Part shown: one piece after another, positions 3,703 to 64,000 of the stretch | Layout of the letters: each line of letters opens with the position of its first letter | How positions within the stretch are numbered: the stretch's first letter is position 1 | DNA from: Macrostomum lignano | Taxonomy: Eukaryota | Length of the DNA: 64,000 nt | Direction: 5' to 3' | Assembly: GCA_002269645.1 (NCBI GenBank) | Contig: NIVC01001008.1 | Location: 186,001 to 250,000 of the forward strand | Notes under the pieces: generated by a model | Told to the model about the DNA's origin: nothing | The model's database searches: none | Seen by the model: the letters and a program-made list of their open reading frames with translations, nothing else | Translations under genes and position numbers: made by a program

Positions 3703-4304
<602 letters not shown>

Positions 4305-7301: not shown

Positions 7302-7342
<41 letters not shown>

Positions 7343-8218: not shown

Positions 8219-9035
8219 CTACTGACACAGGCATTGATCCTACTGACACAGATAATGATCCTACTGACACAAATAATGATACTTACTGACAGATAGTGAT
8301 CCTACTGACAGATAGTGATCCTACTGACAGATAGTGAACCTACTGACAGATAGTGAACCTACTGACAGATAGTGAACCTACTGACACAGATAGTGAACCT
8401 ACTGACAGATAGTGAACCTACTGACAGATAGTGAACCTACTGACAGATAGTGAACCTACTGACAGATAGTGATCCTACTGACAGATAGTGAACCTACTGA
8501 CAGATAGTGAACCTACTGACAGATAGTGAACCCACTGACAGATAGTGAACCTACTGACAGATAGTGAACCTACTGACAGATAGTGAACCTACTGACAGAT
8601 AGTGATCCTACTGACACAGATAGTGATCCCACTGATACAGATAGGGATCCTACTGACACAGATAGTGATCCCACTGATACAGATAGGGATTCTACTGACA
8701 CAGATAGTGATCCCACTGATACAGATAGGGATCCTACTGACACAGATAGTGATCCCACTGATACAGATAGGGATCCTACTGACACAGATAGTGATCCTAC
8801 TGACAGATAGTGATCCTACTGACACAGATAGTGATCCCACTGATACAGATAGGGATCCTCCTGACACAGATAATGATCCTACTGACACAGATAGTGATCC
8901 CACTGATACAGATAGTGATCCACTGACACAGATGGTGATCCTACTGACACAGATATTGATCCTATTGACACAGATAGCGATCCTACTGACACAGATAGCG
9001 ATCCTATTGACACAGATAGTGATCCCACTGAAACA
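8219..9035. repeat. 19/21-bp minisatellite
   Basis: Units CCTACTGACAGATAGTGA(A/T) and CCTACTGACACAGATAGTGAT. Confidence 0.93.
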
Positions 9036-9727
9036 TAGATTAACTATAGCACCCACTGACCCTCCTGACACAGCCCCATCACTTCCGCCGGACCCTGAAG
9101 CAATTAATTCAATCTGCCAGCAGAACTTCAGCATGCAAGCAATTTGTATTTGATTTCTTCAAATTCATTTTTTCGTTCTTCTTGCCTTGAATACGAGAAG
9201 CAGACACAATATAAATGTTCTCTGTTTCCGGATTAAGAATAACACAACTGCTGCAAGCCATGTTAGAAATGATATTTTTTGTTAATCTGCTTCAATATTT
9301 CACGCTGAATTTTTGCTATACTTTTCTGTGCTGCCATTCGCCTGTCTGCCTGAGTTCGTCCGCCTTTGAAGCTCTTTTGTTCTCTTGTCTGCGAGTTTAT
9401 ATTTTTCATTGTTTGCGTCTGTCACATGAGCTGTCGCGGTTGTCAACTGTTTTAACAATAACTGCAAATATTTCAACCCCCCCTCTTACACAAAAATAAT
9501 CTGATTGGCTTTGTAAATTATTTGCATTTACCTGCAAGTCGAATATTTATTAAATACGTATCTGAGCTACTACCCCCACTCATGCACATCTTTTCCTTGT
9601 GTTCTTCTTCCCTTCGATAAGGGGAGATTAAAAAATTGTCCGTTCTGGCTTTAGACTCTTTGTTTTGTAATTCTGCTATGATACTAATCTTAAACTCTTT
9701 GTCTAGGCACCTTTTCTAGTCTCTCTC

Positions 9728-20882: not shown

Positions 20883-21509
20883 AATCTCCACATGTTTGCA
20901 GTGCTGAAAATTCTTTGCCAAATTTTTGTTTTACTATCTTATATGGAGAGCTCCCGTTCTGGTGTTAGATGTTCGTTGTCACAAACGGTGCAAGTCCAGT
21001 CCAGTTTCATTCTCTTATTCAGTAGTCCATGCCCCTGTTGTGGTGGCGTTTGGCTTTGTTTAGGAAAAGGCTCAAATTGCCCTGTATTTATTTTATAGCA
21101 CTGAATGAAAGCATCAAGAGCCACAAGGCATCCCTGATCTGCTTCCCCGATCTTTTGCGGAACTTCTTATAAACTTATTGCCTAGCAGACAGTGGGAAAG
21201 CTCTGTTGCCAGTGGTCCTCATTACGAGCGTATTCTTAATGCAACTATATTATTGGTAGGGGACATCTGTATTACGCTCTATGCATATTGTGTATTCCGA
21301 ACTTTTACGGTAAGACATCAAACGAGAGACTTAATTAGCTTGGAGCCTGCAGTCTGTCCGAAGGCTTCTAGATAATAGGGATATTATTTCGAAAACATAT
21401 TTTGATAGTATAGGTCGTAAAAATATCGTAAAAATATGAATATGAATACTAGCTGGTCCATAAGTAAAAAAGAGGCCTTTGAGTTTTGAAGTTCTGGGAT
21501 TGAGAACTT

Positions 21510-21922
21510 TTGGGGTTTGTAGTTTTGGAGTTGTGAAATTTTGGAGTTGTGAAGTTTTGGAGTTGTGAAGTTTTGGGGTTGTGAAGTTTTTAAGTTGTGA
21601 AGTTTTGGAGTTGTGAAGTTTTGGGGTTGTGAAGTTTTTAATTTGTGAAGTTTTGGGGTTGTGAAGTTTTGGAGTTGTGAAGTTTTGGGGTTGTGAAGTT
21701 TTGGAGTTGTGAAGTTTTGGGGTTGTCAAGTTTTGGAGTTGTGAAGCTTTGGGGTTTAAAAATTTTTGGGGTTGCGAAGTTTTGGGGTTGTGAAGTTTTG
21801 GGGTTGTGAAGTTTTGGGGTTGTGAAGTTTTGGGGTTGTGAAATTTTGCGGTTGTGAAGTTTTAGGTTTGTGAAGTGTTAAGGTTGTGACGTTTTGAGGT
21901 TGTGACGTTTTGGGGTTGTGAA
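21510..21922. repeat. 16-bp minisatellite
   Basis: Unit GTTGTGAAGTTTTGG(G/A). Confidence 0.94.
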
Positions 21923-31077: not shown

Positions 31078-34000
31078 CTATCCAGTGAGCAGGTAGAAGC
31101 ACCAGTAGCACATGTTAAAGAGGGCAAACAGGGACGGAAAGGCCAGTCGGGAGTACTTGTCAATCTTGTTGACGTCCTTCACTCGCGGCAGTCGCTGTCG
31201 AAATTGTCGGGCTCGCCTACGCAGACGCCGCAGCAGTAGTTGCCGCCGTCGGCGTCGGCTAATCGACGTAGCTCGAGCTGACGTGTCGCCATCCGGAGAT
31301 TCGTCGCCGACGTCCTCGCAAACGCAGTCGGCCAGGCGAGGCAGGCTGCTGCAGCTGCGGCTACCCCTGGGCTGCGGGCCGCGGTGGCGACGGCGGCGAC
31401 GGCAGGGCACGTGGGCGCTCAGCGGATAGACTGGCAGCGGCGGCTCGTTGGGCGGCGGCGGCAGCAGCGGTGGCGGTTCCCCATCGTCATCGTCGGTGTC
31501 CTCAACAGCGGAAGCCGAAGCTGATCCTCCAGAGGCCGACGCCGCGATGGCGGTGGTGGCGGCGGTGGCTCGCCTGCTGCGGAGGCCAAGAATTGGCGAC
31601 ATGCAGGCGGCGTCCGAAGACACCGGCAGCGGCTGCGAGGCCACCTGCAGCGAGTGGACGACAGGGTTCGGCTTGATGACTACTGCAGGCAAGAATGGAT
31701 TTGGTGATCGCTTGTAGATGGGATAATTGTTGAAGCTGCGCAGGAAGGTTGAATGCATTTTGGATGTGCTATACATGTAGTTAGAGTACATGCACATGCG
31801 GCAGACGTGGCAAATGGTCTAGATTTGCCGGGGTAAACCACAGATACTAGAATTACTATATGGGCCACTCAGCAATACAATTGTGTGTAAGCTACTTTTA
31901 ATTCAGTAGTAAGTTAAACAAAAGCATTTTAATGTATTTTAAAGCCAAGGCTCATTTATTGGCTCTTAACCCACACCAGCTTAAACCCTCCAACCGCGCC
32001 TTTCCACTACCCCCCGACGCACCGTAATTTTATTGCCTTTCTCGGAAGCTGCCATGTACATTTTAGTGGACTGGCCAATGTACATTATTGCTGAACCAAT
32101 TAGCAAGTTGTTTACGCCGGCAAGCTTGGGCTTCTAAACTTTTCAAAGTTATTTCAGCTGGCTTTATTTTTATAAAATAGCGTATGTATTCTTCTTTGCT
32201 ACTGAACTGAAAGTAGAAAGCTGTTTTACTAAGTAAATATGCCTGAGTGGCCCATCTTATAGTTATTTTAGTATCTGTGGGGTAGATTTGCTGGGGTAGA
32301 CTTGCTGGGGTAGATTTTCTAGGGTAGGAGCTGCTAGATACATGCAGTATTTACCATTACAACAACTCAACAAGCAATGCACTGGCTGCAAATGCATACC
32401 GAATAGTTGCTGTATTCGCTGGCGGCCAGCCGCGGTCTTGCCCTCCTCCGCTTGGCCCTGGCGCCCCAGTAGGTGTAGTTGACCATGGCGTACTCCAGCA
32501 GCGCGGCAAACACGAATACAAAGCACATCACCAGGTAGATGTCTATGGCCTTCACGTAGCTGATGCGGGGCAGAGAGGAGCGCACGCCAGTGCTGATTGT
32601 CGTCATGGTGAGCACCGTGGTGATGCCTGGGGATGCGACAGGGGTGCACTACTGTGATTTCCTGATGAGGGATTTCACACTTGACACTGTCGCCTCCCGA
32701 TGAGGGATTCCCCACTAGACACTGTCTCCTCCCGATGAGGGATTCCCTACTAGACACGAGGGATTCCCCAATGGACTCTGTTGCCTCCCGACAAGGGATT
32801 CCCCAATAGACACGAGGGATTCTCCACTAGACACGAGGGATTCCCATTAGACACTGTCACCTCCCGATGAGGGATTCCCATTAGACACTGTCGCCTCCCG
32901 ATGAGGGATTCCCCACTGGACACTGTCTCCTCCCGACGAGGAATTCACCACTAGACAGTCTCCTCCCGACAAGGGATTCCCCAATAGACACGAGGGATTC
33001 TCCACTAGACACGAGGGATTCCCATTAGACACTGTCACCTCCCGATGAGGGATTCCCATTAGACACTGTCGCCTCCCGATGAGGGATTCCCCACTGGACA
33101 CTGTCTCCTCCCGACGAGGAATTCACCACTAGACAGTCTCCTCCCGATGAGGGATTCCCTACTAGACACGAGGGATTCCCCAATAGACTCTGTTGCCTCC
33201 CGACGAGGGATTCCCCACTAGACACGAGGGATTCTCCACTAGACACGAGGGATTCTCCACTAGACACGAGGGATTCTCCACTAGACACGAGGGATTCTCC
33301 ACTAGACACGAGGGATTCTCCACTAGACACGAGGGATTCCCATTAGACACTGTCGCCTCCCGATGAGGGATTCCCCATTAGACACTGTCGAGTCCCGAAG
33401 AGGGATTCCCCACTGGACACGAGCGCAGGAATAAATTGACAGCTGAGTCGCCGCACCCAAAGCCACCCTCGCCGATGTGGCCTCGTGGTTGATCCAGAAG
33501 GACACCCAGGACAGCATGACGATGAGAATGGAGGGTAGATAGGTTTGAAACACAAAGAATCCGACATTCCGGCGTAGTCGAAACACCAGCGACAGCCTCT
33601 GATAAGAGCCTGAAACGATGGGTTGGGGAATTGGGGAAAGAATTGGGAAGAATGACAAATAGTGAGAATTAACTAACACCCTGTTGCAGCAGGGCAAAAG
33701 GGCGGATAGAATGTGGGGTGTAGGGCGGAAGGAATGGCGGAGGGAATGGCGGAGGGAATGGCGGAGGGAATGGCGGAGGGAATGGCGCAGTGGATGGCGG
33801 AGGGAGTGGTAGAGGAAATGGTGGACAGTTAGGGCGGAAGGAAATGGCGGAGGGAATAGCGAAGGGAATATATCTATAAATCTATCAATTGCGTAATAGC
33901 GGAGGGAATGGCAGAGGGAATGGCGGAGGGAATGGCGGAGGGAATGGCGGAGGGAATGGCGGAGGGAATGGCGGTAAGAGCTGTCCGAGAAAGACAGACC

Positions 34001-34861
34001 CCTGCCTCACCCGTGGACAGCGAGATGGTGGTGCTGGCCACCTCGAAGTGCTCCAATGTGAACTGCGGCATCCGCACCCGGTCCGCTCCGTCTACAGCGG
34101 ACGGTCCGTTCTTCCATTGCATGGTGACGTCCTCCTTGGGATAGCCGTCTGCGCGTGGTGGGAATAAAGGAGTCTGACTTACTTCAAACAGTAATATAAG
34201 ACACATCATCGAATAGACAGATATATAAATCTTACAGCTCTCAATTTCCACCGTGCAGTTTTGCACATCCAGCGGGTAATAGTGCAGATCCATCATGCAG
34301 GCCAGAGTGGTGGTGAATCTGCGTTCCAGATCAAGTTTTCAGCCCAATAAGCCTTTAGAAAGATTAATATGAATACTACTATAAGTATTCCATTGTTTGC
34401 ATGTTTCTCTGTTTTAGCTCGTAGTGTCTTATTGCTTGTCTGAGCGGGGGGGGAGGAGGGACAGAGCAGCTCAGTGATACCGCGTCAGAGTACCCGCGGG
34501 TTCGAATCCGTTCTCAAACACTTATTTTTTGGGCTATACGCGGGATTCACACCCGTAAGGACCAACCTCAAAGACAAAGACTACATGTGTAGGTCACGAA
34601 TGACTATGAGAAAGTCAGGGGCGCTGTACACCCTGTACAACGGAATGAGCAGGACTGCTTGTCTCCTTGCTGGCTGCGGGTCAGCTGTCGCGCCTGTGAT
34701 TTGTGGCAGCACCGAACCCCCGTTACACCCCTCCCCCTACAGGCAGCTAAATAGTATCTGTCAGTCACTCTATCTGCCTGTCTGTCTGTCTGTCTGCTTG
34801 TCTGTCTGTCTGTCTGTCTGTCAGTCAGTCTTTCTGTCTGTCTGTCTGCCTGTCTGTCTGC

Positions 34862-34894
<33 letters not shown>

Positions 34895-37800
34895 ACGCAC
34901 CTCATCCCATAGACGATCCTGCCATCTCCGTACAGGCGCACCATCTTGTTCTGCTCAGTGACATCGTGCAGGTAGGAGTGCTTGTCGTTGGCTAAGAACG
35001 TGTCCGGCACCCAGATACGGCTGGCGAAGTGGCCAGTGAGGGTCATGGACCTGTTCGGACTGGCCAAGTCGAATGCTAGCCGATGATCAGTCCAGTACTG
35101 GTTGAGGTACATCGTTATGGTGTAGTCCTGAAGGTCCGGGATAGTGCAGAGAGCTGCAGTGCGACTCAGTTCAACAGAATCAACAGAGACCTAAACTAGA
35201 CAAAAACTAGAAATATTGATGACAGAGGAAAATTTTGCTGGCCTGAAAGGTTCTCCATCCCTTCGGAGAAAAGTTTCTGTTCTTCGACTCGCAATGGACC
35301 ATGGCAGGGTCCGAGGACCCTATCTCAAGGGACAAAAATTCGATATCAGCAGATTTATTTTTGGTCGGCTAAATTTTTAGTTGGCCGTGGCGGAGCAGCT
35401 GAGCAGTACTCTGAGCGTCTGACTGTCGCGCCACAGATCCCAGACACAGGGAGTGTACATGCCCACAGGCCCTTCCTGCAGCTGTTAGTTTTTGTTTATC
35501 CAATTTCAATAGCTAATATGCAAAATTGTCTTCACCAAACTATCTTGAACAGAAAATTAACTAGCACCAAGTATAGCCATATACAGATCTGTGATTTGCT
35601 TACAGAGTTTACTAAGTTACCATGCTGGCTTCAATGTCGAGAGAGCAGAGAGACTGCTGTAGGGCGAGAGTGGGGGGAGCAAAGAGAAATCAAGGGCTTA
35701 ATCCCTCTTCTTAGCAACTGCAAAACTGCTCTGGATAAGAGAGAGAGGAGGTAAAGCGAGAACTAGGCGGGTAGGAGGGGAGAGGCGGATTGGCAGCTTG
35801 CGGGTTTTTTGTCCGTCTGGGCGGCCCTATCGGCAGCTTTAGTTAGCGGGGAAATTCAAGACCAAAGGATTGGTGAGCGAAGAATCGACTGCATGCTTAA
35901 GATCGGACACTGCAAAAGTCAAAAAGTTCTTTTCACGCTCCCAGTTGCTCATTTTAATCCTTAGACAGCTGAAAGGGGAGTGCGATCAACTGAAGGATGC
36001 GACATAGTTCATATTCAGGACCTGAAGGGAATTTTACTGAAATACCTGAAGAGGATTCAACTGAAGGATATGAAGGAGTTTGACAGAAGCACCTGAATGA
36101 TTTCATTTAAAACCTGGAAGGGGATTCATCTGAAGAACCTGAAGGGGGATTCATTTGAAGGATATGAAGGTGATTCATCTGAAGGGCCTGAAGGGGATTC
36201 ATCTGAAGGGTCTGAAGGGGATTCAACTAAAGGATCTGAAGGGTATCCATCTGAAGTATCTGAAGGGGATTCATCTGAAGGATCTGGGGGAATTTATCTG
36301 AAGGATCTGAAGGGGATTCATCTGAAGGGTCTGAAGGGGATTCAACTAAAGGATCTGAAGGGTATCCATCTAAAGTATCTGGAGGGGATTCATCTGAAGG
36401 ATCTGAGGGAATTTATCTGAAGGATCTGAGTGGATTCTACTGAAGGATCTAAGGGGATACAACTAAAGGATCTGAGGGGATTCATCTGAAGTATCTGGAG
36501 GGGATTCATCTGAAGTATCTGGAGGGGATTCATCTGATGCTAGATTTAGGTTGCAGAAGATGCCCCATCATGTATACAAGAGGTATGCTCACCATATTAA
36601 CTTCGGAAATGCTGTCAAAGCTGGCGATCGCCACCTCCATGCGGATGTCGAGCACGCCAGCTGATTGGTCAATGTTGAAAGAAAAAATGTAGCTTTGCGG
36701 CTAGTTGCAGAACACATTTTTATGAAACTTCGCTTCATTAATTGTCACTTTTAAAAAGAAAATGTGATACATTTTGGTTTAGCCTGAGTTAATTTATTTA
36801 ACCGGTACGTATCTCTTAGCCCTCGGGCAAATACATGTATATAGTGCTATGGTGCTCGAGAATCATTTCAACGTAAAAATTAAACCAATTTTATCCATTA
36901 GGTTTCGGCGGAGGGTGTTTACTAAAAAATATAAGAGAGTCTTTTGTCTACTACTGAATAACATTTGTTGATTAATATTATCTAAGAATTATTTTAGGAC
37001 ACTTGAGTAAAGTCGCTCTCACTAATCCTGAACTGTGGACTTTTTCACCCTTTAGCGGGGCCTAAGGGTTGCTTACTTGCCAGCATAAGGTGAATTAGGA
37101 GATGCCTACTGGCCAGCATAGAGTCAATGGGACTGCTCAGCATGGCCAGCATAGCGTCAATGGGGCTGCTCAGCATGGCCAGCATAGAGTCAATGGGGAC
37201 TGCTCACCATGGCCAGCATAGCGTCAATGGGACTGCTCAGCAAGGCCAGCATAGAGTCTATGGGGACTGCTCAGCATGGCCAGCATAGAGTCAATGGGGC
37301 TGCTCAGCATGGCCAGCATAGCGTCAATGGGGCTGCTCAGCATGGCCAGCATAGAGTCAATGGGGCTGCTCAGCATGGCCAGCATAGCGTCAATGGGACT
37401 GCTCAGCAAGGCCAGCATAGAGTCTATGGGGACTGCTCAGCATGGCTAGCATAGAGTCAATGGGGCTGCTCAGCATGGCTAGCATAGAGTCAATGGGGAC
37501 TGCTCAGCATGGCCAGCATAGCGTCAATGGGACTGCTCAGCATGGCCAGCATAGCGTCAATGGGACTGCTCAGCAAGGCCAGCATAGAGTCAATGGGGCT
37601 GCTCAGCATGGCCAGCATAGAGTCAATGGGGACTGCTCACCATGGCCAGCATAGCGTCAATGGGACTGCTCAGCATGGCCAGCATAGAGTCAATGGGGAC
37701 TGCTCAGCATGGCTAGCATAGAGTCAATGGGGCTGCTCAGCATGGCTAGCATAGAGTCAATGGGGACTGCTCAGCATGGCCAGCATAGCGTCAATGGGAC

Positions 37801-46398: not shown

Positions 46399-49300
46399 AT
46401 GCGTTTCCATTTAATTATCTTAGCTATCTATGTCTCCTGTTTTCTCATGTTCAGAACAGAAGGCAAATATATCAGTGGAATTCTGAAATCAGACAGTGTA
46501 AGTATTTTTTAGCTATTGCTATGGCTATGATAAATTAATGCTCAATAGCTTTTAGGGTGGTTCAACTTATTGTTTTAAAATATTGTTTTTTAGATAAAAA
46601 ATTTTAAGTTTTATATTTGGTTTTTCTTTTTTATTTGAAACATCTAACATAGGTCATTTTATCTTGTCACCAAACAAGATAAACCAAATCTACTTGCTAC
46701 CAAAATGACTATCACTAAAAAGGTTCTGATCTTTTCACCAAAATAACTTTGGCTTGTCATTGAAAAAAAACTATAATTTGTAGCTATAGACTTATAAATT
46801 TAATAATTCTTTTACTAATTCATTGTTTTTTTATGCAGCGCTTTTACTAGCTTAATAATAAAAGATAATTAATAAAAAGATTTCTACTGACCTTACCTAA
46901 ACTTATTATTTATAGCTAGTATATGATATAACTGACATATAATATAATTAGAGACTCCGGCGAGCTCCGAGTAGCGTGGTTGAAACTAGAAAAAACGTAC
47001 ATTTAGCACCTACTTCAAACAGAAAACTAAGATAGAAAAAATATGACTGTGTAAAAACTGAAATACACAATAAAAAGCACAATAAATGTACTTCAAAATG
47101 AGTGCTCAAACAGCTTCTAAAGTCGATCAGAGACAAAGTTATGGACAGTTAAAGTTTCATCATTTTTGCATTCCCATGCAAAATGAAGCCTATTTTACGG
47201 TAAAAATCGTGACTTTGGAAAGTCTAATTTTTAATAACGAAATGACCGTTTTAAACAAAAATAATCAATATAAAAGCAATCTAGGCATAATTAAGTATCA
47301 TTTTATGTAAATTTCAGAAGAAAAAAATATTCCCTGTTGCCTACAGGGGTAGTCCAAATTTTTTTCTTCGATTTCTTTGTATCATCCGATTGCTGCACGG
47401 AATTCAAATGTAAATTTCTTTATTCTTTGTTGCAAGTGGAAGGACATGCAGAAAACCGTTTGGGATTACCTAGTCGCGCATTGCTACTAAGTTGATTCAA
47501 AGATCATAGTAAAATCAAAGTAAATGTCTATTTAAAATATATTTTTTATTTTTTTTGAGAAAAAAAGAGACGCACAAATACAGTTGATATTGACTTTCAT
47601 ACATAATTGCATGACAAGTGTGAGGAATGAAAGTTCCTTCTGACAACTGACCGCGCACTTAGAAATATGAGCATCAATATGTTTCAGCGAGATTCAGGTA
47701 AACGGCAGGAGTAACTATGACTTTCAGTGCAAATGCAATTGCATCGTCACCTTATTAGTAGGAAAAATGAACATTTTTAAACTGTATTTTGTAAGTTAAT
47801 TGCACTATGAAGTCAATACACACTGTCTTGAAATTCATTTCCATGATAACCATTACAACTGCTGTCTTCAAGATGTGTACTCTTCTATTCTATGTACACA
47901 TTGTACATGGGGGTCATATGAGAGGCTTCCGTTGGAAAGCTGCTGGATATCAGACCCCAGCATAGTGATCCCAACAAGCGACCCCTGGCATTCGTCTGGT
48001 CAACGATGCAAACTCTCAAAAATGTATGGTATGTATGGTACAGAGTACCGTGGAACTGTTGCAATAGGTTTATGCCTGTGCAATAAAAGCAGGTAGGTGA
48101 TTTTTTATATGGCATTGAAAAGCAGCCATTTTGTTTGAATGTCTTCTGACTTATGCAGCTACTGAGTTAGCTAGATTCTTCATTGTAATAATGAGTGATT
48201 ATTTTGGGTGCAAACTCTGAAGACTTAACATGCAAATACTAGCCTAGGTGCTAATCTGTGTGGGAGATAGTACATAATATGAATCTCAGGCAACTACGTT
48301 TTGTGAACAGACCAAGCTGTGCTTGAAAAACTTTGTTAAACAATGAATACACTTAGTCATCATCATCATCATAATCGTCATCGTCATCAGAGAGAACATT
48401 CAATTCGCCAGCCAGGTAGTCCTTGTTGAGGTCATAGGTGTACTCCCCTTCAAAATCATCGAACACAACCTTGAACTCCTGGCTGAGAATGTCCCTGCTC
48501 TGGCAGGTTGATGGCAGTCGCTGGAGGACGTGGCCTGGTATCCAGTCCTCCCCATCTGTGAAGCAGAACTTCATCTCGATTCTTCTGCTCACCAGATCGG
48601 GGAGGTTGGCCAGCGTCCGCTGATTGGTGGTCTCGTCAATGGCGTCGCCCTCATCCTCGTGTCTTCTTCCTCGTCCTCGTCCTCGTCCTCCTCCTTGACC
48701 TCGTCCTCCTCCTTGACCTCGACCTCGTCCTTGACCTCGACCTCGTCCTTGACCTCGACCTCGTCCGCGTCCGCGACCGCCGCCTCGTCCACCAAGGCCA
48801 GGCCCAGCTTGAGCAGCCACAGCTCCTGCATCTTGAATCCGTTGACGACGCTGCAGCCTGTCAGCAATGGCAGTGCGGACTCGCTCCTTGCGCTCGCGAG
48901 CATCCAGGAGGCCGGACGGAGGCACGGTGGGCGCATCGGCACCCTTTTGCTGGTCCTGTAGTTCCACTATCTGCAGAACTTCACGCAGTTGGCTTCGCAG
49001 TTGAGGCACACTGCGCTTGACACCAGCCGCGGAGAAGTTGAGCAGGCTGGCCTTGTCCTTGGGCAGGTGGATCTCTACAAAATATTACATGAAACATAAT
49101 TTTCATGCTAAGCAGTGAGCAAACAGACACATTTTTCTGCCCACACGTACTGGTCGCTTTGTGCAGTTGCAGCTGTGCTTTGATGGCCTTCTCGTGCTGG
49201 TCAGGGGCTAGTTGGTGCAGCACAGCGTCCATCCTGGAGATGGTTGGCCAGAGTCCGCCGTAGGCCTCGATGACACGGAGAATGGATCGGATGCTCTCGG

Positions 49301-52300
49301 CGTTCGAGTCCTTCTTGCGCTGCTTTTCAGCTAGCTTGGCGCGGAGAATCTCCTGGCGGCAGCTGCGCAAGGCGTCGGCGCTCTCCTTCCCTCGCTTTTC
49401 GAGCTGAGGGACCAGCTTCCGTGCCCTGGTAAGAAGGAGGTCCTTCTCGCGCTCCGTCTTGTCGGCCAGCCACTCGGACGTGCAGTTATAGCCGAAGAGC
49501 ACAAGCGACTCGCGCGCAAGAGGGCGCATGTTGGGCCTGTCTGCGACGCACTTATCCAGCATCCCGAAGCCTCGCTCGACTGCTACGTTGTCCTTAGGCG
49601 CAGATGAGACAAGCTGGGCAACTTCTGGCGTGAGCTGCCGCAGAGTGCCCCCAGGCAGGTGGTCACGCACCTCTCTCTCTAGCAACACAAGCATGTGTGT
49701 CGCCATGATCTGAAGTGGTGTTTTAAAGTATAAAAGCTACAATCTATACATTCGTTAATGTTCATTGATACTGTACTGTACTTTGTGACTAATCAGCGCA
49801 TTCATAATTCAAAACCCATATTTACCTGCAGAGCCTGGCCGACAATCTCGTTCTCCAAGGCTGTCAGCTCAGACGTCAGCGCCGCCCAGATGTCCTGCAG
49901 CTGGATGTCCCGGAGAACCGTCTGGGCCAGTTCGGGAAATGGGCCAATCATGCTGCTGGCCACAGTAACGCCCTCGGACGATGACAGCTGGCGCAGCCAA
50001 TTGCAAGCGCGCTCATAGCGTTCGTTCATGTCCGTGAGGGTCACGTCTCGGCAGCGCAGGAGCACCCACAGTGGCCGGATTAGCAGAACGTCAGCAATTC
50101 CGAGTGCACGGCAGCCACTCAGCAGCAAATCAGATGCCAAGTCAGCCTGCACTGCGATCAGCAGGCGGTTGCTGCAGGTGTACTCAGCCAGGAACTCGGA
50201 CAGGCGGTCTCGCTGCCAGAAAATGTTTCCCCCGTTGGGAAATGTGATGTAGGCGCGGTTGCCACGGAAGTCGTCCAAACGAAGGGACGGTGCGCCCTTC
50301 GACTCCAGATACGTTTGAAGCGGAATCGCAACGCCACACTGTTCACTGCCCAGGGCATGGAACGCCTTGCAGACGGTGCGGATTAGACGCTGCGTGCCAG
50401 ATTCAGCTTGGGACGGGCGGAAGCCAGGGAGGGCAGCAGATCCGACGGCCTCTGCAGCCATGCAAGTCTCCCACTCGCGCAGCGCAGCTTCTGCGGCAGC
50501 AGCAAGATTTACAATCACATGCATGCCGCAGAACAGTGCAGTCACAGGTGGAGGTGGGTTCACGCCTTGCTGGGTTGCCAGCTCCTGCCGCATCTCGTTG
50601 AGCAGTACGTTGAGGCACTTGTTGACCACGTGTCGGTCAGTCATTAGGAAGTTGACGCGTGCCAGTAGATTACACTTCAGGCGGCGTCTCTCTTCGTCGC
50701 TCGAGTGGGCAAGAACTACCGAGCAAAACAGATCGACCAGCTCTTCCACCGAGTAGTCCAGTTCGCGGGCGTAGATGTTCGCGGTGCCACCCTCGACCTC
50801 GCGAAGAGAAACAGCCATCGGGCGGCTGTCCCCAGTGTCAACCTATGAATGGTGCATATGTAATACAAAGCATATTGTGAATATAAAAGTTCATTCTTAT
50901 TAACTAAAAGTTCTCTTTTTGTGAATATTAATAATAATAATTAATTATTAAATTCATTTCCTTCCTTTAAGTCCAATTATTTGTCAATATGCACGAAAAT
51001 GCATTACTCAAGTTTACCTGGTAGGCGGCATAGTGTCGGCCCTTCTTGCTGGTAGCATCATGCAAGATCGTTATTGGTCGGTCCTCCTTTGCCCCCTGAT
51101 GCAGCAGCTTCTCCATCGCGCTCGCCTTAGCTAGGCAGCTGCCAAGGCTGTAGCTCAAAGCACTGACCTGCGAACGCGACGGAAGCGCCAAGTTGCCGGC
51201 GTCGATGCCAACGAGGTCCGTGAGGACGCGTCGAATCGCTGGCTTGACGTGCTGCACAGGGACGTGGCAGTCCAGCACCAAGTGCATACAGGTGCTGATG
51301 ACCTGGTTCGTGTACTGCTGTCCTCCACTCGGACGTGATGTCTTGGTGATGATGGAGCCCACACTCTGCTGTTGAAGCTTCTCGTTTGCTTCACAGATGA
51401 GGCCGTGCAAACTGCGGGTATCGGCTCTGAGCTCCTTCACTCTCTCAGTGGCGAGCTGACTTGACTTGCTACGGCTGTTGGCACGCCTCAAGCGCAGGTC
51501 ACGCCTACGGCTGGCAGATGATGCAAAGGCCTGCCGCTTGGCATGCTCAGCACGCAGCTTGTCGTATCTGCCTTGTAGCCGTCTGAGACGCTGATTCCAG
51601 ACGCGAATTTCAGGCCGCTTGGCTAGCTTAGCCCTCAGTCGCCGGACTTCAGCTTTCTGCTCGGCCAGGGCGGCCTTCAGCTGCGCAACTTTGGCTTTGG
51701 CCTTGTGAACTCGCAGATCAACAATGGCTGCCTCGATGCCGATCTTCTCTTCGACAGAGACACTCATGCCAGACTGCTTCGATTGGTCAAGCCTTGCTGG
51801 AGTCGGTGAGTTCGAGGCCATTGGCATTGGTGATGTTGACAAAGGCACAATCGGCATTGCCATTGGGTTCAACAGCTGTTGCAATGCCGCTGGAGGTTCG
51901 AATTCTCGTGCCAAATGGGCCTCATATGTCGAGATGCCATCACCAGACGCAGCCTCACGAGTGTGACTCTTCAGCAGAATTTGGGCTTCTCTCTCTAAAT
52001 CCTTAATCCTTTTCAGGAGTGCCTTCTTCAGATTGTCAGAGACAAACTCCATCAAGTGAGAAGGTAGCCCAACCAGTTTCAGAATCGGCTGGGCCTTGTC
52101 AAGTCCTGTATGGGCCTGGCTGCTGGACTTGAGATGAGTAATCACCTGGCCATTGGTGACTGGGCGAATGGATGATCTGGACCTGCCACGAAGCCGAAGG
52201 TTGGGCTTGGTCTTGGGTGTGGAGGATGTGGCCATAGATAGTATTGTTTAGTCAGTCAGTACTCCAGTAGTCTACTCCAGTGGCAGCTGGAATGGTAACA

Positions 52301-55300
52301 TATTGATTGACTTACTGAGTTACTCAGGTGATTCAGTGCCAAATAAGTATGAATATGTCTCATTATCAATAATGAGACATATAATTTATGTCTCAGTTAT
52401 CAATAGTTTATAATATATTTGTAATATTTATAATAATATAAATAAACTTATAATATATTATTTATTATGATACATTTAATTTTAATTTATAATAATATAA
52501 TAAATATAATTTATTATGTTTTTTAAATTTAGTATAATAAATTTATAATAATTTATCAATAAAATCAAATTGTAGCTTTAAAAAGCATATGTATTGCCCC
52601 CGTGACCACACACAGTTATCATTTTTCCTATACTTAGTGCAAAATAACTTAAGAAGAAAGGACACCACTGACTTGCCTTGTACATAGCAAGCAAGGCAAG
52701 AAAAAAAGCAAAAAAATGACACCAAGAACAGCAAAATTGGTAATACAAAACGAAAGTTCTTGCTGGTCAACCACGAAAAAAACAAATATTTTGGAAAAAA
52801 TGATCACAGCCCATAATGCAAATATCCCATAAGAGAATCCGCAAAAAATGGTCACTAAAATGGCCACAACTTTCTTATTCCTTTACCAAATCTAATAATA
52901 TAATACTTTTTGCAAACAAGAAAGTAAGATCTATCAGATAAGCATAAAAAATCTGTCAGACTTTTAACTTTCAAAATCTCACTGGAGTCCCTAATATAAT
53001 AAGTCTAATATTTTAAGACCTTATATATCAGTTTTAGCAATATTGGTAACAGTTATAGTTCCCTTGATTAATAACACACAAAGTGAATATCCATTGTTTG
53101 ATGTTGTCAATAAAAGACAATGTAATATTAACAATAGTGAAAAAAACTATAAATATCATCATCTTCATTCTTTTGTATATATGCACTAATATATGCTTAA
53201 TTATGCTTAAAATACAATTGTTAGTATATATTGCAAAATCAAATATAAAATAAGGCCTATCTTGCTTGGCTTTAGCCATTTTATGTTTTTCTTGGACTAT
53301 CTCAAACCTGCTTTTTGCTTAGTTTACAACTCATTATATTTTTCTTGTCAATTTTTCATTTATATTATTGTTTGTTAGAATAAATATTAAACTTTTTCTA
53401 GAATTTCATTATATAGCTTAAGGCATGACAACTTCTATCATGCATTTGTAACTTGGCAATTTAAATAAGGTTATGCATTGACAAGGATAGAACATAGGCC
53501 TAGCCATTTGTTTGCTTTGGCAAAATGTTTTATGTTTGATAACTCAAAACCTAATAGAAAAATCAAGTCTATAAACCTAGTGCCTAAGAATGTCCATAAA
53601 CCATCTCTAGAATCGCCCATAAGCCACTAAAATCGCCCAAAAGCCACCTCTAGAATCGCCCATAAACCATTTCTATAATCGCCCATAAGCCACCTCTAGA
53701 ATCGCCCATAAACCATCTCAAGAATCGCCCATAAACATCTCAAGAATCGCCCATAACCACCTCTAGAATCGCCTACAAACCATCTTTAGAGTCGCCCATA
53801 AACCACCTGTAGAATCGCCTATAAACAGCCTCTATAATTGCCCATAAGCCACCTCTAGAATCGCCCATAAACCACCTCTAGAATCACCCATAAGCCACCT
53901 CTAGAATCGCCTATAAACCACATTGTGCATAATGCATTTATAAAACTTTGACTGCATGGGACAATGAAAATTTCGAAATTCAATTACCTTTAAGGACTGG
54001 CAATTCCTAACCAAGTTTTGCTTCTCACCAAGTAGCGGCTCTCTGCAATTCAACATGAAATACCCAGTCGTGAGTAAAATCTGAGAATGTGCATCAAATT
54101 TTGAAAATTGCATTCGTATTTCTGCTGTTCTAAATTAAATGTCAACTTGGCGCGTATATTTGATTTCCAGCCGTACCTGACGCAAAACATGCTGCTTTAT
54201 TGGGATAAGCGCAATTTCTGGGAGAGTGTTTATAAAACTGACTTGGTGAGCTGATTTATGGTTTATGGTATTTATCCAGGGAAGAATTTTATATCAGGTA
54301 ACCAGATGTTCACAAAATCCATCCCCCCCCAAATTGGTTTCCTTGCCAGACTTGCACCGAAAAGGAGAGCAAGCTAACTCCCAGCGACCTTCAACTGTTC
54401 CGACTGCGACCAGGCAATAATGACATACCCGGATTGGATTGCAAAACTGTTCGCAATGGGTCGCAACTGCAGTGCAATTCGCAGAAATTCAGCTTTAATT
54501 CTGCCCGACCACGCTGGTGGTACATTGTCATATCTAACTGCAACACTCGGAATGTAAGTCATTTCTATAATAAATCGATATTACCAGGTAGCAGGCCTGT
54601 GGGCCACCCTGTCGCAACGCCTTAGGCGACATCGTCCCAAAACCAGTGCTGACACCTGGGGCCCGTGCTATAGAATACTCTTAACTCCTAAATCCTTAAG
54701 AGTGTCCTAACTCCTAGCTCCTAGCTGGCTTTTCTGTGGCACTATAGAATCAAGAGTAAATTTTAAGAGCTAGGAGGCTCCTTAAGGACGTTAGGAGAAC
54801 TCATTAAGGTCCGTGGCATGCTATAGAATTAGGAGAGGAAGTCTAGGAGCTAGGAGTTGGCTTTTAGGAGTGATTCTAGGAGCGTGTGTCCTATAGAATG
54901 AGAAAATTTCGCTCCTTACTCTTGACTCCTAAGGAAGAGTTCAAGGGCCAATTTTCACTCCTAGACAAGCTACTAAGATTATAATGTTTCGGACAGCGAA
55001 TCGGATTCTGATGAGGAAGGAGTCAATGATAGACGCCGTCGACAATTTAAGGCAAGAATTAATTTTTTTGAAGAAGATCCAGCCGAGAGTGCTATGCGTT
55101 TTAGACTTAACGAGATCCAGCTTTCAAGCCTAACAGATGGAATTCGACACAGAATCGAACATCCAACACGGTGCACATAGCAATCTTCGCATTCTTAGTT
55201 ATGGTTGTACTAAACGCACAAAAGAGAACCTCTTTGCGTGCAGCGACGGCTCTCACAAAAGATTTTTTTGAGCAATTTGCATTTTCACTCCTGAGATTCA

Positions 55301-58300: not shown

Positions 58301-61071
58301 CAGATCCTCAGTTGGTGGGGCACTGCTAGCCTCCCAGACTCTCGGATCCTCAGTTGCTGGGGCACTGCTAGCCTCCCAGACTCTCGGATCCTCAGTTGCT
58401 GGGGCACTGCTAGCCTCCCAGACTCTCAGATCCTCAGTTGCTGGGGCACTGCTAGCCTCCCAGACTCCCAGATCCTCAGTTGCTGGGGCACTGCTAGCCT
58501 CCCAGACTCCCAGATCCTCAGTTGCTGGGGCACTGCTAGCCTCCCAGACTCCCAGATCCTCAGTTGCTGGGGCACTGCTAGCCTCCCAGACTCCCAGATC
58601 CTCAGTTGCTGGGCACTGCTAGCCTCCCAGACTCCCAGATCCTCAGTTGCTGGGGCACTGCTAGCCTCCCAGACTCCCAGATCCTCAGTTGCTGGGGCAC
58701 TGCTAGCCTCCCAGACTCCCAGATCCTCAGTTGCTGGGGCACTGCTAGCCTCCCAGACTCTCGGATTCTCAGTTGCTGGGGCACTGCTAGCCTCCCAGAC
58801 TCTCGGATTCTCAGTTGCTGGGGCACTGCTAGCCTCCCAGACTCTCAGATCCTCAGTTGCTTTGTCATCTGTCAATCTGTCAAAGTCAAAGCTTTTCCAA
58901 AGTTTTCAAATTTTATTAAGCTGCAAATTAATTAAAAATGTAAGAGTTATAATTATTATAATAAAAACTAGAATAAAAAATAATTATAATCCTTTTTGCC
59001 GCGGGTTTCCCATCTGAAGGTAGCCGCTAATTGGGGCAGGCGGTGCCGATGAAGACGCGCAGCCTCTTCAAACCGGCGCATTTCGCCATGTTAGCAGCAT
59101 TCTTGTTAAAACGAGTACCTCTGGCGGGATTGCGCAATCCCCTTGTCATTCAAACCATGCGCTGGTATTGCGTAACCAGGCGTCAGCTGCTAAGTAAAAT
59201 GGAAGCCTAAAATTTCGACTTGCTATGCAGGAAAATTAATATTAGATTTGAAGTTTTTTAATTTTATATTTACAAAAACTTGGCAACAGATCAAAGCATG
59301 TATAAACTGTATGAGTGATTAGAATATTCCACTGCTGGAAGGGCTTCTGGAGTGTGGGAATCTGTAAGTCATTAAAGCATTCTCAGGCTTCATTTAATTG
59401 CTTCGTCTTCGTCTAGGCAAATATATATGATGCTTGTTTGGTACGTTCGCATCTGAAACCCCTGCCCTGTGCTCTCTGGCTGAGGTAGACTGCTCAACAA
59501 CTATATTATTGTAGTAATTTCGTCTCCAGAGTAATAAACTAGGTGGTGGCAGGTACACCTGCAGCTATTATTGTACCATTGTGTGGAATAAATTTCTTGT
59601 TGTACAAGCGTATGTTTCTCTAGCGAGCAAATATCGTTTCTTTGCAATAATATGCTTCAGTCAGTGGGTGAATTATCTGTTTTAATCCCTAAAGTTCTCC
59701 CTAAAATTGTTGCTCACGCCGTACTTCACAAAAGCTTGTCAAACTCTATCTGTACTACTTTTAGTAAGAATGCGAGTATTTTTATGCAAGTTTTATTACT
59801 ATTAGATAAGAAATTAATTAGTATTATACTTGTTACCTAGAATAAGTCAGGTGTTTTCTTACAAGTAATTAGGACGAGCAACTTCGTTAACACACCAACA
59901 TCTCTACCCTACTCTACCATGTTTATAAGTTGAGTCGCTTTCACATTAACAGTTCTGGAATCTTGAAATCCCATTAACCGATTTTATATGAGGTAGATAC
60001 TTCTAATGAAATATGAATTACCGAAAATGTATAATTTACAATTAATGACATCTTTTTTGGCTGCTTCCATTCTCAGAATCCAGCTCTTGTGCTGCTTCCA
60101 TTGTCAGAATCCAGCTCTTGTGCTGCTTCCATTGTCAGAATCCAGCTCTTGTGCTGTTTCCATTGTCAGAATCCAGCTCTTGTGCTGTTTCCATTGTCAG
60201 AATCCAGCTCTTGTGCTGTTTCCATTGTCAGAATCCAGCTCTTGTGCTGCTTCCATTGTCAGAATCCAGCTCTTGTGCTGCTTCCATTGTCAGAATCCAG
60301 CTCTTGTGCTGCTTCCATTGTCAGAATCCAGCTCTTGTGCTGCTTTCATTGTCAGAATCCAGCTCTTGTGCTGCTTCCATTGTCAGAATCCAGACAACAA
60401 TATTCCGTACAAAGTCCTCATTTTGAATCCCCAACGTGCAGATCGGCTCCATCACCTACGAGGACGCCGAGGAGCGGGCCGCTGTCGGTCGCGACTTGGG
60501 CGGCCTCGGCGGCGACATTGATGTTCACGGCGGCGGCGGCGGTGGAGGCGGCGGCGGCCTCGGCGGCATGGGGAAGCTGGCCTGCGACCCGCTACCAGAC
60601 GGCCGCCCGTTTGCCCAGTTCTCCCTGTCGCAGAGCCGCAGCTTCATCGGCGTGCCGGCTAATAATTCTTCGTCGAGTCTGCTGCTGCACCAGCAGAAGC
60701 AGCAGCAACAACAGGCGGCTGCTGCTGCCGCCGCCGCCGCGGCAACGCCTGTCTACGAGGAGATTCGCGATTGCTCATCTTCGGTGGACCGGTACTCGGC
60801 CTACTCCAACACGGCGACTTCCCCGCGTCGCCCAGAGTCAACGCTAATTGGCTGGTCGTCTGGAGGACTTGGCGGAGTCGCCGGCGTCGGCGGCGTCAGC
60901 AGCGGCAGCGGCAATCTGCTCTACGAATCGTCCGATCCAGCCAGGGTGCAGCAAGGCGGAGCTCTAGTTAGCGGCGGCTATCCCAGCATGGGCGTCAGCT
61001 CGCTGTCCTACTGCGGCTTCCCGACTAACGAGAGGCGGCGCGGCGGCAGCCGGCCATCCCTGCCAGTCTGA
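46399..61071 (+). CDS. TMEM145: TMEM145-like (GPR180/GpcrRhopsn4 family) membrane protein, 638 aa, join(46399..46497,53995..54069,54171..54245,54350..54553,55650..55734,55831..55902,56911..57060,57474..58000,60442..61071)
   Basis: Exons read [12 protein letters not shown]|[10 protein letters not shown]...MKYPV|...QNMLLYWD...W..VYK|TCTEKES...[13 protein letters not shown]|[13 protein letters not shown]...EHFSADE|..LEF..|[10 protein letters not shown]|DPGLVY...GYCLIGLQ...FPYDLKTSQ|IGS, matching recalled TMEM145 motifs in order. All junctions are GT-AG with consistent phases and the total is 1917 nt. Confidence 0.92.
48353..52235 (-). mobile_element. Intact intron-containing RNase H-like (D-D-CxxH-E) transposase-like gene with C-terminal Spindlin-type Tudor domain, 1171 aa, complement(join(48353..49074,49151..49709,49826..50842,51018..52235))
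   Basis: Three GT-AG introns (phases 0, 0, 1) join four ORF-track pieces into one open frame of 3516 nt. Motifs: ILHDATSK (D1), LMTDRHVVN (D2), FCGMH (CxxH), [15 protein letters not shown] (E). An RG-rich linker follows, then [10 protein letters not shown]...DWIPGHVL...[24 protein letters not shown]. Element termini were not identified. Confidence 0.8.
53586..53918. repeat. 23-bp minisatellite
   Basis: Unit CTCTAGAATCGCCCATAA(A/G)CCAC. Confidence 0.92.
54659..55536. mobile_element. Internally deleted PIF/Harbinger DNA transposon (878 bp) in TMEM145 intron 4
   Basis: Perfect 18-bp TIRs GGGCCCGTGCTATAGAAT / ATTCTATAGCACGGGCCC with a 3-bp CTG duplication on both sides. Plus-strand fragment 54983-55180 ([12 protein letters not shown]...RFRL...IEHPTR) resembles a Harbinger transposase N-terminus. 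Minus-strand fragment 55180-55301 ([24 protein letters not shown]) resembles the Myb/SANT partner. Subterminal CTCCTA(A/G) repeats are present. Confidence 0.85.
56083..56757. repeat. 37-bp minisatellite in a TMEM145 intron
   Basis: Unit GAGTCACTATATTCCCGTGATGTTTCAGAGACTTATT. Confidence 0.93.
58124..58862. repeat. 42-bp (33-bp variant) minisatellite in a TMEM145 intron
   Basis: Unit GCTAGCCTCCCAGACTCCCAGATCCTCAGTTGCTGGGGCACT. Confidence 0.95.
60060..60393. repeat. 31-bp minisatellite just upstream of the last TMEM145 exon
   Basis: Unit GTCAGAATCCAGCTCTTGTGCTGCTTCCATT. Confidence 0.95.
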
Positions 61072-62097: not shown

Positions 62098-63639
62098 CAA
62101 TCTGTGGCACCTGGCAGTTGATACTAGTAAATTTAGCAAGAGTTCTGTTATTGCTTCAGGTCCCTGTATATACGATATTAGTGAATTGAAATGCAAACTG
62201 GTCGGTGTTAGCATCATTGTGGTTTGAAGCAAAAACTCAGAACTTCATTCCAATCGCCTTCAATTTTTCTTCTTAAAAGAAAAATGTTAATTTTTGCACT
62301 TCTCCACAGGCCTATACATTTAAGTGGGCCAAGCTACACGTGTATTCATTTATTGTACGTACAATGGTTACGAGTATTGCAATTAGTTGTTTCTTTTACC
62401 TTCGAAAGCAGTTTCGCCTTGGAAAATGCTCATTGTTTTTATTTAATCCTGAACACAATTTTTTTAACTGACAACCAATGCACCGAGCACCATGCAGTCC
62501 ACCTCGCTGTGTGTCTCGCACTCTTCCCCAATCATTCGGCATTTTTCCTTGTGTTTCCTTTGTTTCCCTGCACAGCAGATGTATACATATATTGAATATG
62601 CTTCTCTTGATGCCGTGCACCAGATTTCTAGTACTGCAAGATGTGCAGTAAATCTTCGGGCTTAATGCAAATTTATCATTGATTGTTATTAAAGCGGCAA
62701 CATTGCGTTATGATTTAATTACGTTAATTACTGCAGTGATTTTGTTTTGTATAGACTATATACAATTGTATGCAGTAAGCTTCTTTGTTAGTTGTTTGTT
62801 TTACACTAAATTTTGTGGTTTGCGATTCATCATTTATATTAATTAAAGAATGCACAAATTCACCCGCTTTAATCACGCTTAACTTTAAATTTTAATTTGC
62901 TTATTTAGCCTTGACTTTTTACTCTGAGACGCTTTGTAATTCTTTTTTACACTGTATTTCTTATGCTACTGCGATACAAATGCAAATTACCTACTTACCC
63001 TCGTAACATTTTATTAGTCAAATCGTTAAAAAAAGTACATATCAGTTGTGTAGTATCTTTGGTTATTTCTGACACCGTTTTGTTTTAATTAAGGACATTT
63101 GATTGTGTTTAAAAACGCCTTCAGTCTTGAGAAAGTCATTTTTGTGTTATTTAACTTTAAGGATCTGCTAAAACTGATATCAAAACATAGTAACAACAGG
63201 TTCGATGGCAGCATTATGTATTTTCATTAAAAACCGAATTAGTAGAATAAACTTATCGAAAACCAGTATACCACAGTAATACATAAAATACTTGAGCTAT
63301 TTAATTTTCCCTCACCTAAGGTTTGATGAAAGTTAGTTGCGCTTAAATAGTTTCTCGGAAACAATGATCTGACATTTACAAAGAGGAAAATTGCCAGCGT
63401 AAATAAAATTGTATAAAAATTAAGCAAAGAAACTTAGAGAAATAGCGAAATGTTCCTACAAGTAATGTTATGGGCAAGCTCTTTATGCTTACCTGTATGT
63501 ATAATGCAGCTGGGTAACTGTCTATGGCACTGCGGTGCAGGCCGTCAGAAAGGATGAAAAGCGCGAAAGCGATAGTCTACAAGCAGACCCACGTCGACTG
63601 CCATTTTTTACCGTTCAAACTACCAAAATGTATTTACTC

Positions 63640-63911
63640 TCCACTTGGGCCCGGCCATAGAAAACAGAAACGTATTTATTCATCACTTGGGCCCGGTCAT
63701 AGACTACAGAAACGTATTTATTCCCCACTTGGGCCCGGCCATAGACTACAGAAACGTATTTATTCCCTACTTGGGCCCGGCCATAGACTACAGAAACGTA
63801 TTTATTCTCCACTTGGGCCCGGCCATAGACTACAAAACCGTATTTATTCCCTACTTGGGCCCGGCCATAGACTACAAAAACGTATTTATTCCCCCACGGG
63901 CCCGGCCATAA
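63640..63911. repeat. 42-bp minisatellite
   Basis: Unit ACTTGGGCCCGGCCATAGACTACAGAAACGTATTTATTCCCC. Confidence 0.93.
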
Positions 63912-64000
63912 GATAATCGAAGATATCATCTACTGAAATAAACAAGTACAAATGCTAGCTACAGAAATCTATCTTATACCTATAAAATGAAAACTTTGTG

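Follow-up and report, generated by a model that had tools for sequence, protein, structure and literature searches.

A hAT-like transposon of Macrostomum lignano whose transposase carries a Spindlin-type Tudor-like domain, a candidate reader of histone marks

The window analysed here, a stretch of 64,000 nucleotides from the flatworm Macrostomum lignano (contig NIVC01001008.1, positions 186,001 to 250,000), contains a complete cut-and-paste DNA transposon of 6,045 bp. Its minus-strand gene encodes a transposase of 1171 residues, in which a core with the predicted fold of a hAT-like DDE transposase is followed by a C-terminal domain that family profiles assign to the Spin/Ssty (Spindlin-type) Tudor-like repeats, a group that includes readers of methylated histone tails. 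This domain is a candidate reader of such a mark and may guide where the element inserts. Comparison with homologues shows that the fusion of transposase and reader is the norm of a large, unannotated family spread across Bilateria, and that it is ancestral and not peculiar to the copy in the window.

Structure and mobility of the element

The complete element extends well beyond the gene interval (48353-52235) and is bounded on both sides by terminal inverted repeats (TIRs) and a target-site duplication (TSD):

46942-46948, no strand: left TSD, ATATAAT, flush with the element end
46949-52993, minus strand: complete autonomous transposon, bounded by TIRs and TSD
46949-46964, plus strand: 3' TIR, TAGAGACTCCGGCGAG read inward, starting TAGAG, which fits YARNG, the hAT TIR consensus
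52978-52993, minus strand: 5' TIR, TAGGGACTCCAGTGAG, starting TAGGG
52994-53000, no strand: right TSD, ATATAAT, identical to the left copy

The two TIRs, TAGAGACTCCGGCGAG and TAGGGACTCCAGTGAG, agree at 13 of 16 positions, and the limits of the element coincide with those of a GC-rich island (53-55% GC within the element versus about 31-33% in the flanks). In a generic inverted-repeat scan the TIRs were indistinct among AT-rich noise; they were located by comparing two paralogous loci, L002 and L003, and then searching the window for related ends. Both of these loci encode P0004, a 46% paralogue of the window protein, and their neighbouring genes differ. They have only one block in common, 7.3 kb long and 99.9% identical, which runs exactly from TIR to TIR between unrelated flanks. 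The block ends in TAGGCTGTCCAGTGAG and its inverted partner TAGACTGTCCAGTGAG, and is flanked by perfect 7-bp TSDs, CCTATAA in L002 and GTATAAT in L003.

A third locus, L001, which encodes the paralogue P0006/P0007, holds two elements. Element A is 6,560 bp long with perfect 16-bp TIRs (TAGGGTGTCCAGTGAG), and its flanking 7-mers (TTATTAT at L001:8901-8907 versus ATTATTT at L001:15468-15474) form the sole imperfect TSD among the five elements, a mismatch that may stem from slippage in AT-rich sequence or from rearrangement. Element B (L001:17477-19484) is 2,008 bp long, has no transposase gene and is flanked by a perfect TSD, TTAAAAG. Its TIRs are perfect and identical to the 5' TIR of the window element, to which its similarity is otherwise limited to the first 145 bp (71%); element B is a non-autonomous relative, which transposases of this family probably mobilise. 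The 7-bp TSD is thus perfect in four of the five elements (ATATAAT, CCTATAA, GTATAAT and TTAAAAG), and extension to 8 bp breaks every match. The TIRs terminate in TAGGG/TAGAG in the window element and TAGGG in L001; those of L002 and L003 (TAGGC/TAGAC) depart from YARNG at the fifth base.

Public gene models P0002 and P0005 are chimeras of near-identical copies of the window gene and genes that are absent from the window, from which it follows that further copies lie at other loci. TIRs starting with TAG, 7-bp TSDs, near-identical dispersed copies and a deletion derivative together point to a mobile family that has probably been active recently. The TIRs, the 7-bp TSD and the copies at other loci also bear out the identification of this DNA as a transposon, which the initial annotation had made from the gene.

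Within the 3' untranslated subterminal region, about 110 bp (window 47908-48018 and L002:14890-15010) are 76% identical between elements whose proteins are 46% identical. The stretch may be a conserved cis-acting region to which the transposase binds.

The transposase gene

Joining four minus-strand exons (52235-51018, 50842-49826, 49709-49151 and 49074-48353) gives 3516 nt, or 1171 codons and a stop, and the spliced translation has no internal stop. Four long minus-strand open reading frames (ORFs) occupy this region (48353-52235). The three introns, of 175, 116 and 76 nt, all start with GT and end with AG, and are AT-rich (23-36% GC versus about 54% in the exons). Public model P0001, which is 100% identical to the window protein, aligns with it in a word-indexed protein search with no gap at any of the three splice junctions, and the M. 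lignano paralogues, at 41-46% identity, likewise align over the junctions without gaps. The stop-free join, the GT-AG introns and the junctions used by P0001 uphold the 1171-residue frame with three introns read in the initial annotation, and the motifs it listed were all found: HDATSK (D393), LMTDR (D475), FCGMH (C511-H514), FRGNR (residues 598-602) and VERGFG (E790). The parts of the gene are as follows.

51018-52235, minus strand: exon 1, with the N-terminal helical region, the coiled coil, the start of the catalytic core and D393 (51057-51059)
50843-51017, minus strand: intron 1, 175 nt, GT..AG
49826-50842, minus strand: exon 2, with D475 (50636-50638), C511xxH514 (50519-50530), FRGNR (50255-50269) and an all-alpha insertion domain
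49710-49825, minus strand: intron 2, 116 nt, GT..AG
49151-49709, minus strand: exon 3, with the catalytic E790 (49575-49577)
49075-49150, minus strand: intron 3, 76 nt, GTACGT...TTGTAG, phase 1, junction used by P0001
48353-49074, minus strand: exon 4, including the stop codon, with C-terminal helices, RG repeats, reader domain and acidic tail
48665-48790, minus strand: RG/RGG repeat region, residues 1027-1068, read in the translation
48389-48604, minus strand: Spin/Ssty (Spindlin-type) Tudor-like domain, residues 1089-1160, with cage positions F1101, W1109, F1136 and Y1143
48356-48388, minus strand: acidic tail, residues 1161-1171 (11 residues)

The N-terminal helical region (residues about 24-115) can be aligned throughout the family and probably binds DNA. 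It is followed by a coiled coil (residues about 160-290), a region for which the family profile retrieves coiled-coil matches in the PDB. Between the core and the RG repeats lies a helical linker. Acidic C-terminal tails are also present in the L001 and L002 paralogues.

Public gene models represent the end of these proteins poorly: none of the 7 Macrostomum models retrieved has a complete reader domain, and P0006 has only its second half. P0001 and P0003 contain an additional in-frame GT..AG splice (LQR|HGEDW; window 48556-48847, minus strand) and end in 'KIST'. This splice deletes the RG repeats together with strand 1 of the reader; it could be either a real isoform without a functional reader or a prediction artefact.

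A Spindlin-type domain at the C-terminus

The homology of the tail to Spin/Ssty domains is seen through family profiles, the window domain alone being borderline. When the last 104 residues of the window protein were searched alone, the matches were of borderline significance and all to Spindlin Tudor-like repeat 2 (E 0.046 in the PDB), and a profile of three Macrostomum tails found the same repeat at E 0.06. A word-indexed homologue search gave no matches with the tail alone, and with the full protein it returned Macrostomum proteins only, low-complexity words having filled the candidate list. By tblastn, all three divergent Macrostomum subfamilies end in an RG-rich stretch, a domain of about 75 residues and an acidic tail, even where the gene models miss them.

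In homologues from other animals, the Macrostomum tail profile matches the very end of the protein. A hidden Markov model built from non-Macrostomum tails only scores the window tail at 48.9 bits (E 2e-17). Searched against the PDB, a profile of 52 tails with the window sequence first matches Spindlin-1 to -4 at E of about 2e-40, and scores the Spindlin repeats at 62 (repeat 2), 50 (repeat 1) and 25 bits (repeat 3); the next family consists of the SETDB1 Tudor domains at E 2e-3. Homologues P0056, P0064, P0080, P0052 and P0137 pass the gathering threshold of PF02513 over the full model, with 29-48 bits. These results establish the C-terminal 72 residues of the window protein as a Spin/Ssty domain, as the initial annotation had proposed. 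Its approximate limits for the domain (about 48392-48595) fall close to those measured here (48389-48604), and the PF02513 match that it expected was obtained for homologues and not for the window's own domain. Chance resemblance of the tail to Spindlin was considered and rejected.

In SPIN1, Tudor-like domain 2 binds H3K4me3 through an aromatic cage (F141, W151, Y170 and Y177), and HMMER alignment pairs residues of the window domain with this part of SPIN1 as follows, the numbering being consistent with the aligned segments of the HMMER output:

F1101 (EMKF) with SPIN1 F141
W1109 (EDW) with SPIN1 W151
F1136 (VVF) with SPIN1 Y170
Y1143 with SPIN1 Y177 and Y1145 with SPIN1 Y179 (EYTY)

This is the same F/W/F/Y-x-Y pairing that had earlier been made by eye. 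Across the 52 domains, the position equivalent to F141 is aromatic in 36 (69%), while that of W151 is W in 39 and aromatic in 77%. The equivalent of Y170 is aromatic in 52/52 (100%) and that of Y177 in 45/52 (87%). In SPIN1 itself, Tudor-like domain 2 is the reader of H3K4me3, repeat 1 is a binder of H3K9me3, and repeat 3, which lacks a cage, mediates contacts with other proteins (PMC11499256).

A hAT-like catalytic core

Pfam scans of the window protein and of nine homologues from outside Macrostomum did not recognise the core. Among these proteins there was no match to PF05699, DUF4371 or DUF659, to the BED or any other zinc finger, or to the THAP domain (PF05485). UniProt attaches the label 'DUF659' to P0006, which was not among the proteins scanned. 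Sequence profiles of the core searched against the PDB reached no transposase, Hermes included, and matched coiled coils and Spindlin only.

Conservation of the motifs was assessed in an alignment of 90 homologues, in which the sequences from outside Macrostomum share 22-31% identity with the window protein. D475, H514 and R602 are the same in every sequence, and D393, C511 and E790 are at least 90% conserved, which goes beyond chance at such low identity. An AlphaFold2 model of residues 298-935 made with this alignment has a mean pLDDT (predicted local distance difference test score) of 95 and a pTM (predicted template modelling score) of 0.90. It places D393 on beta-1, D475 directly after beta-4 and C511xxH514 directly after beta-5, followed by an all-helical insertion of about 230 residues and then by E790 on a helix; the D-D-E spacing is 82 and 315 residues. 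With this model as the query, Foldseek put eleven Hermes chains at the top of its PDB matches, aligned over about 580 columns at E 8e-7 to 7e-5 and probability 1.0. The transposase of the Drosophila P element came next (E 0.011-0.032), then the ISCth4 (IS256-family) transposase and retroviral integrases.

By this model the core is an RNase H-like DDE transposase that belongs to the hAT/P group and stands closest to hAT, in agreement with the initial reading of the D-D-CxxH-E motifs. We call the core hAT-like and not canonical hAT, because the TSD is not of 8 bp and no sequence match to the hAT domains was found.

Distribution of the transposase-reader fusion

An exhaustive profile search retrieved 2,241 cluster representatives at E<=1e-3, 273 of them at E<=1e-30. 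Full-length members are typically 900-1,300 residues long and have the same layout as the window protein. The members whose source organism could be established belong to Mytilus (mussel), Ptychodera (acorn worm), Branchiostoma (lancelet) and Lepisosteus (gar), and all are labelled 'uncharacterized' or similar; collinear single proteins of identical architecture occur in five phyla. Tails were counted in those representatives from outside Macrostomum, 82 in all, whose sequence includes the full end of the core and runs on for at least 90 residues:

Spin/Ssty-like tail: 69 of 82 (about 84%)
Agenet-like tail: 9 of 82 (11%)
Neither: 4 of 82

P0040, P0043 and P0060 contain two Spin/Ssty domains each, although a stricter count scored two of these three. 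In the Agenet-type sub-clade the C-terminal 120 residues or so carry the pattern 'VAVAF.D.WYPG.V...F.WP', and their profile matches plant Agenet-domain histone readers at E 7.5e-5. The proteins assigned to this sub-clade are P0022, P0034, P0039, P0041, P0069, P0103, P0108, P0109, P0113 and P0144. The RG repeats are found in Macrostomum members only, and the linker elsewhere is rich in Lys, Arg and Glu.

A C-terminal reader of the royal family is therefore an ancient feature of these transposases, and it appears to have been exchanged at least once. Since Spin/Ssty and Agenet readers replace one another within the family, the reader function itself is likely to be under selection.

A possible role in target choice

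An interesting question is what such a domain would do for a transposase. With moderate confidence, we think that the observations are best explained by a transposon, probably active until recently, whose Spin/Ssty domain tethers the transposase to methylated histone tails and thereby biases insertion. The N-terminal region would recognise and bind the element ends, the coiled coil would assemble the multimer or synaptic complex, and the core would excise the element and reinsert it with a 7-bp stagger. The reader domain would then tether the transposase or transpososome to nucleosomes with a methylated histone tail. The most plausible mark would be of the H3K4me3 type, as for Tudor-like domain 2 of SPIN1, and H3K4me3 is accordingly a plausible, if putative, ligand for target choice. 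Tethering of this kind would bias insertion towards the active 5' ends of genes, by the same logic as in the chromodomain integrases of chromoviruses. Reader-guided insertion had been proposed in the initial annotation and is still plausible, now on a considerably wider base.

The four related insertions at the three paralogous loci are all 0.9-1.7 kb from an annotated gene start, which weakly supports insertion guided by chromatin:

L001 element A: between two divergent gene starts
L001 element B: 1.1 kb inside a DnaJ gene
L002 element: 1.7 kb upstream of a gene
L003 element: 1.6 kb inside a kinase gene

Several points weigh against this reading. The proximity to gene starts concerns four insertions, was examined post hoc and depends on genes called automatically. 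A preference for 5' ends and open chromatin is also known from hAT and P elements that have no reader domain, and the target sites of the present elements are merely AT-rich, as is the non-coding background. The domain in the window is also less clear than that of its relatives: neither the tail alone nor the whole protein has a meaningful match in Pfam, the window's own PF02513 score being below the reporting level, and a single-sequence AlphaFold2 model of the tail is poor (pLDDT 43). In Macrostomum the equivalent of H139, a near-invariant His in the family, is M or V, and the equivalent of Y170 is F, so specificity may differ from that of SPIN1. Finally, the 7-bp TSD and the lack of PF05699 and BED matches in the scanned proteins place the element outside canonical hAT.

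The main alternative, though rather unlikely in our estimation, is that the Spin/Ssty domain binds methyl-arginine or a non-histone ligand, and so regulates activity, localisation or evasion of silencing and not the choice of targets. Candidate ligands would be the protein's own RG repeats in methylated form, leading to self-inhibition or oligomerisation, or a host protein of the germline or small-RNA pathway. Methylated RG motifs are common ligands of Tudor-family domains, and in each of the three Macrostomum subfamilies an RG repeat of 42 residues precedes the domain, at a distance of about 20 residues. SPIN1, moreover, serves as a protein-interaction platform (PMC11499256) and participates in transposon silencing (PMC11499256 and bioRxiv 10.64898/2026.08.20.746118). 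The RG repeats are nevertheless specific to Macrostomum, whereas conservation of the domain and the cage extends to the whole family, and the Spindlin repeat with the highest score is the H3K4me3 reader of SPIN1, Tudor-like domain 2 (62 bits, versus 50 and 25 for the others).

Distinctly unlikely, in our view, is that the aromatic residues are structural only and that the domain is a generic module for chromatin, DNA or dimerisation, or a degenerate remnant, with no specificity for a methyl mark. The cage-less Tudor-like domain 3 of SPIN1, which mediates protein contacts (PMC11499256), provides a parallel, and the equivalent of F141 or W151 is non-aromatic in about a quarter to a third of members. 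Against this, the window copy retains all four cage positions, the Y170 and Y177 equivalents are aromatic in 100% and 87% of domains, and the presence of a different royal-family reader (Agenet-like) at the same place in one sub-clade speaks for selection on reader function.

We give hardly any credence to the view that this is a host gene, domesticated and immobile, or a chimera of gene prediction, and not a functional transposon: some public models are chimeric or truncated (P0002, P0005, P0166 and P0167) and M. lignano is partly polyploid, such that near-identical copies need not mean transposition, but the TIRs and perfect TSD sit flush at both element ends, the L002/L003 segment is 99.9% identical exactly from TIR to TIR between unrelated flanks and neighbours, L001 holds a 2-kb non-autonomous derivative with the same TIR, the P0002 and P0005 copies adjoin genes absent from the window, and single proteins of the same collinear architecture exist in five phyla. 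Domestication was rejected on the TIRs, the TSD and the dispersed copies.

Neighbouring sequence

The element is situated in an AT-rich stretch of about 12 kb, with exons of a Cys-loop receptor on one side (31-35 kb, minus strand) and an ORF for a transmembrane protein on the other (57.5 kb, plus strand). The exons at 31078-35127 (minus strand) belong to a Cys-loop ligand-gated ion channel, and two of them match the extracellular domain of the glycine receptor at 37% and 57% identity. No position could be detected in the window for the 5' exons of this receptor (those that would precede 34237-35127, minus strand), and it is possible that the transposon lies inside or upstream of the receptor gene. 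The position in the first intron of a gene that the initial annotation gave for the element is thus a putative one.

Elsewhere in the window, a single uninterrupted ORF of 1489 residues (24463-28932, plus strand) resembles a receptor tyrosine kinase of the EGFR/ErbB type. Its translation contains furin-like repeats rich in cysteine, a transmembrane segment and the kinase motifs HRDLACRN and DFGLAK; its lack of introns is unusual. The window is also rich in minisatellite-like arrays. Tandem-repeat arrays at 2421-4393, 5329-5928, 6817-7880, 8589-9153, 15725-16408, 21331-21729, 58426-58935, 60006-60521 and 63524-63929 appear as long repetitive ORFs on both strands, e.g. (SIYL)n, with periodic units of at least 24 nt.

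Implications

Full-text searches of the literature, to which Repbase and Dfam are external, found no description of a fusion of a transposase with Spindlin or Spin/Ssty, of a DNA transposon with Tudor or of hAT with Tudor; prior annotation as a repeat family in Repbase or Dfam is possible. As far as these searches reach, the fusion is not a family feature that has already been published. Integration guided by a reader is well known for long terminal repeat (LTR) retrotransposons, through chromodomains, and for retroviruses, through host tethers; for DNA transposons of the cut-and-paste kind it has received little attention. The present family offers a compact natural transposase with a built-in candidate reader of histone marks, conserved between animals as distant as flatworms and fish. 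It is apparently still active in one flatworm that is amenable to transgenesis. This would make it directly testable whether a DNA transposase reads chromatin to choose its targets, and adds to the transposon catalogue a large family whose core has no Pfam model. It could also inspire gene-delivery vectors aimed at particular chromatin states.

A wider proposal, which we put forward tentatively and regard as doubtful taken as a whole, is that these proteins form an unrecognised hAT-like lineage as old as Bilateria that steers its integration by a Spindlin-type reader (Agenet-type in one sub-clade), and that the vertebrate Spindlin genes may share their Tudor-like repeat with these transposons. 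The sharing may have come about through domestication of a transposon domain or through an ancient capture in the opposite direction; vertebrate Spindlins are known as readers of H3K4me3/H3K9me3 by which young transposons are flagged for silencing. This amounts to a concrete hypothesis on the origin of the Spindlin reader fold.

Comparison with known systems

The closest known relatives of the core are the hAT transposases, represented by Hermes (PDB 2BW3, 4D1Q, 6DWZ and 8EDG). In both, a large all-alpha insertion divides the RNase H-like DDE core, a CxxH comes immediately after beta-5, the catalytic E lies within a 'P..N..SER.F' motif, and the TIRs are short and begin with TAG, with a YARNG terminus in the window element. 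The D-D-E spacing of 82 and 315 residues is close to the 68 and 324 of Hermes. In contrast to hAT, the window element has a TSD of 7 bp and not 8 bp, and its protein lacks a BED zinc finger and any sequence match to the hAT Pfam domains, has a long N-terminal coiled coil and a C-terminal reader domain, and contains FRGNR where hAT has the RW motif, an equivalence that is putative.

With the P element and THAP9 (PDB 6PE2 and 6P5A) the window protein shares membership of the broad group with an RNase H core and insertion domain, and a coiled coil upstream of the core. The 7-bp TSD falls within the 7-8 bp of the P superfamily, in which Galileo and 1360 also have 7-bp TSDs, and the P element is the second-best structural match (E 0.011). 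That match is weaker than the one to Hermes (0.011 versus 8e-7), and no THAP domain was detected in the window protein. Dada, another member of the CxxH group, makes TSDs of 6-7 bp, lacks TIRs and inserts into small-RNA genes; its protein has zinc fingers at both termini, and its D-E spacing is about 176 residues (PMC3706591). It was ruled out by comparison of features, the window element having TIRs, AT-rich non-genic targets, a D-E spacing of 315 and no zinc fingers.

For the reader, the likeness is to Spindlin-1 to -4 (PF02513), to whose Tudor-like repeats the domain is homologous, with repeat 2 as the best match and aromatic residues at the four cage positions. The Spindlins are stand-alone proteins with three tandem repeats, whereas the window family has one repeat (two in a few members) fused to a transposase, and in Macrostomum the H139 and Y170 equivalents are M/V and F.

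In proposed function, the closest parallel is with the chromoviruses (Ty3/gypsy), which likewise carry a royal-family methyl-lysine reader at the C-terminus of a DDE recombinase, and whose chromodomain directs integration by chromatin mark. The window family differs in that its reader is of the Spin/Ssty or Agenet type and its members are cut-and-paste DNA transposons and not LTR retrotransposons. A survey that relied on domain co-occurrence has reported transposable elements with captured Chromo and PHD readers, one of them a hAT-Chromo fusion from a sponge (bioRxiv 10.1101/2021.11.30.470311). Because the core of the present proteins has no Pfam model, surveys of that kind would miss them as transposases. 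What sets the family apart from other reader-carrying elements is that its fusion is ancient and spans phyla, and does not belong to one species.

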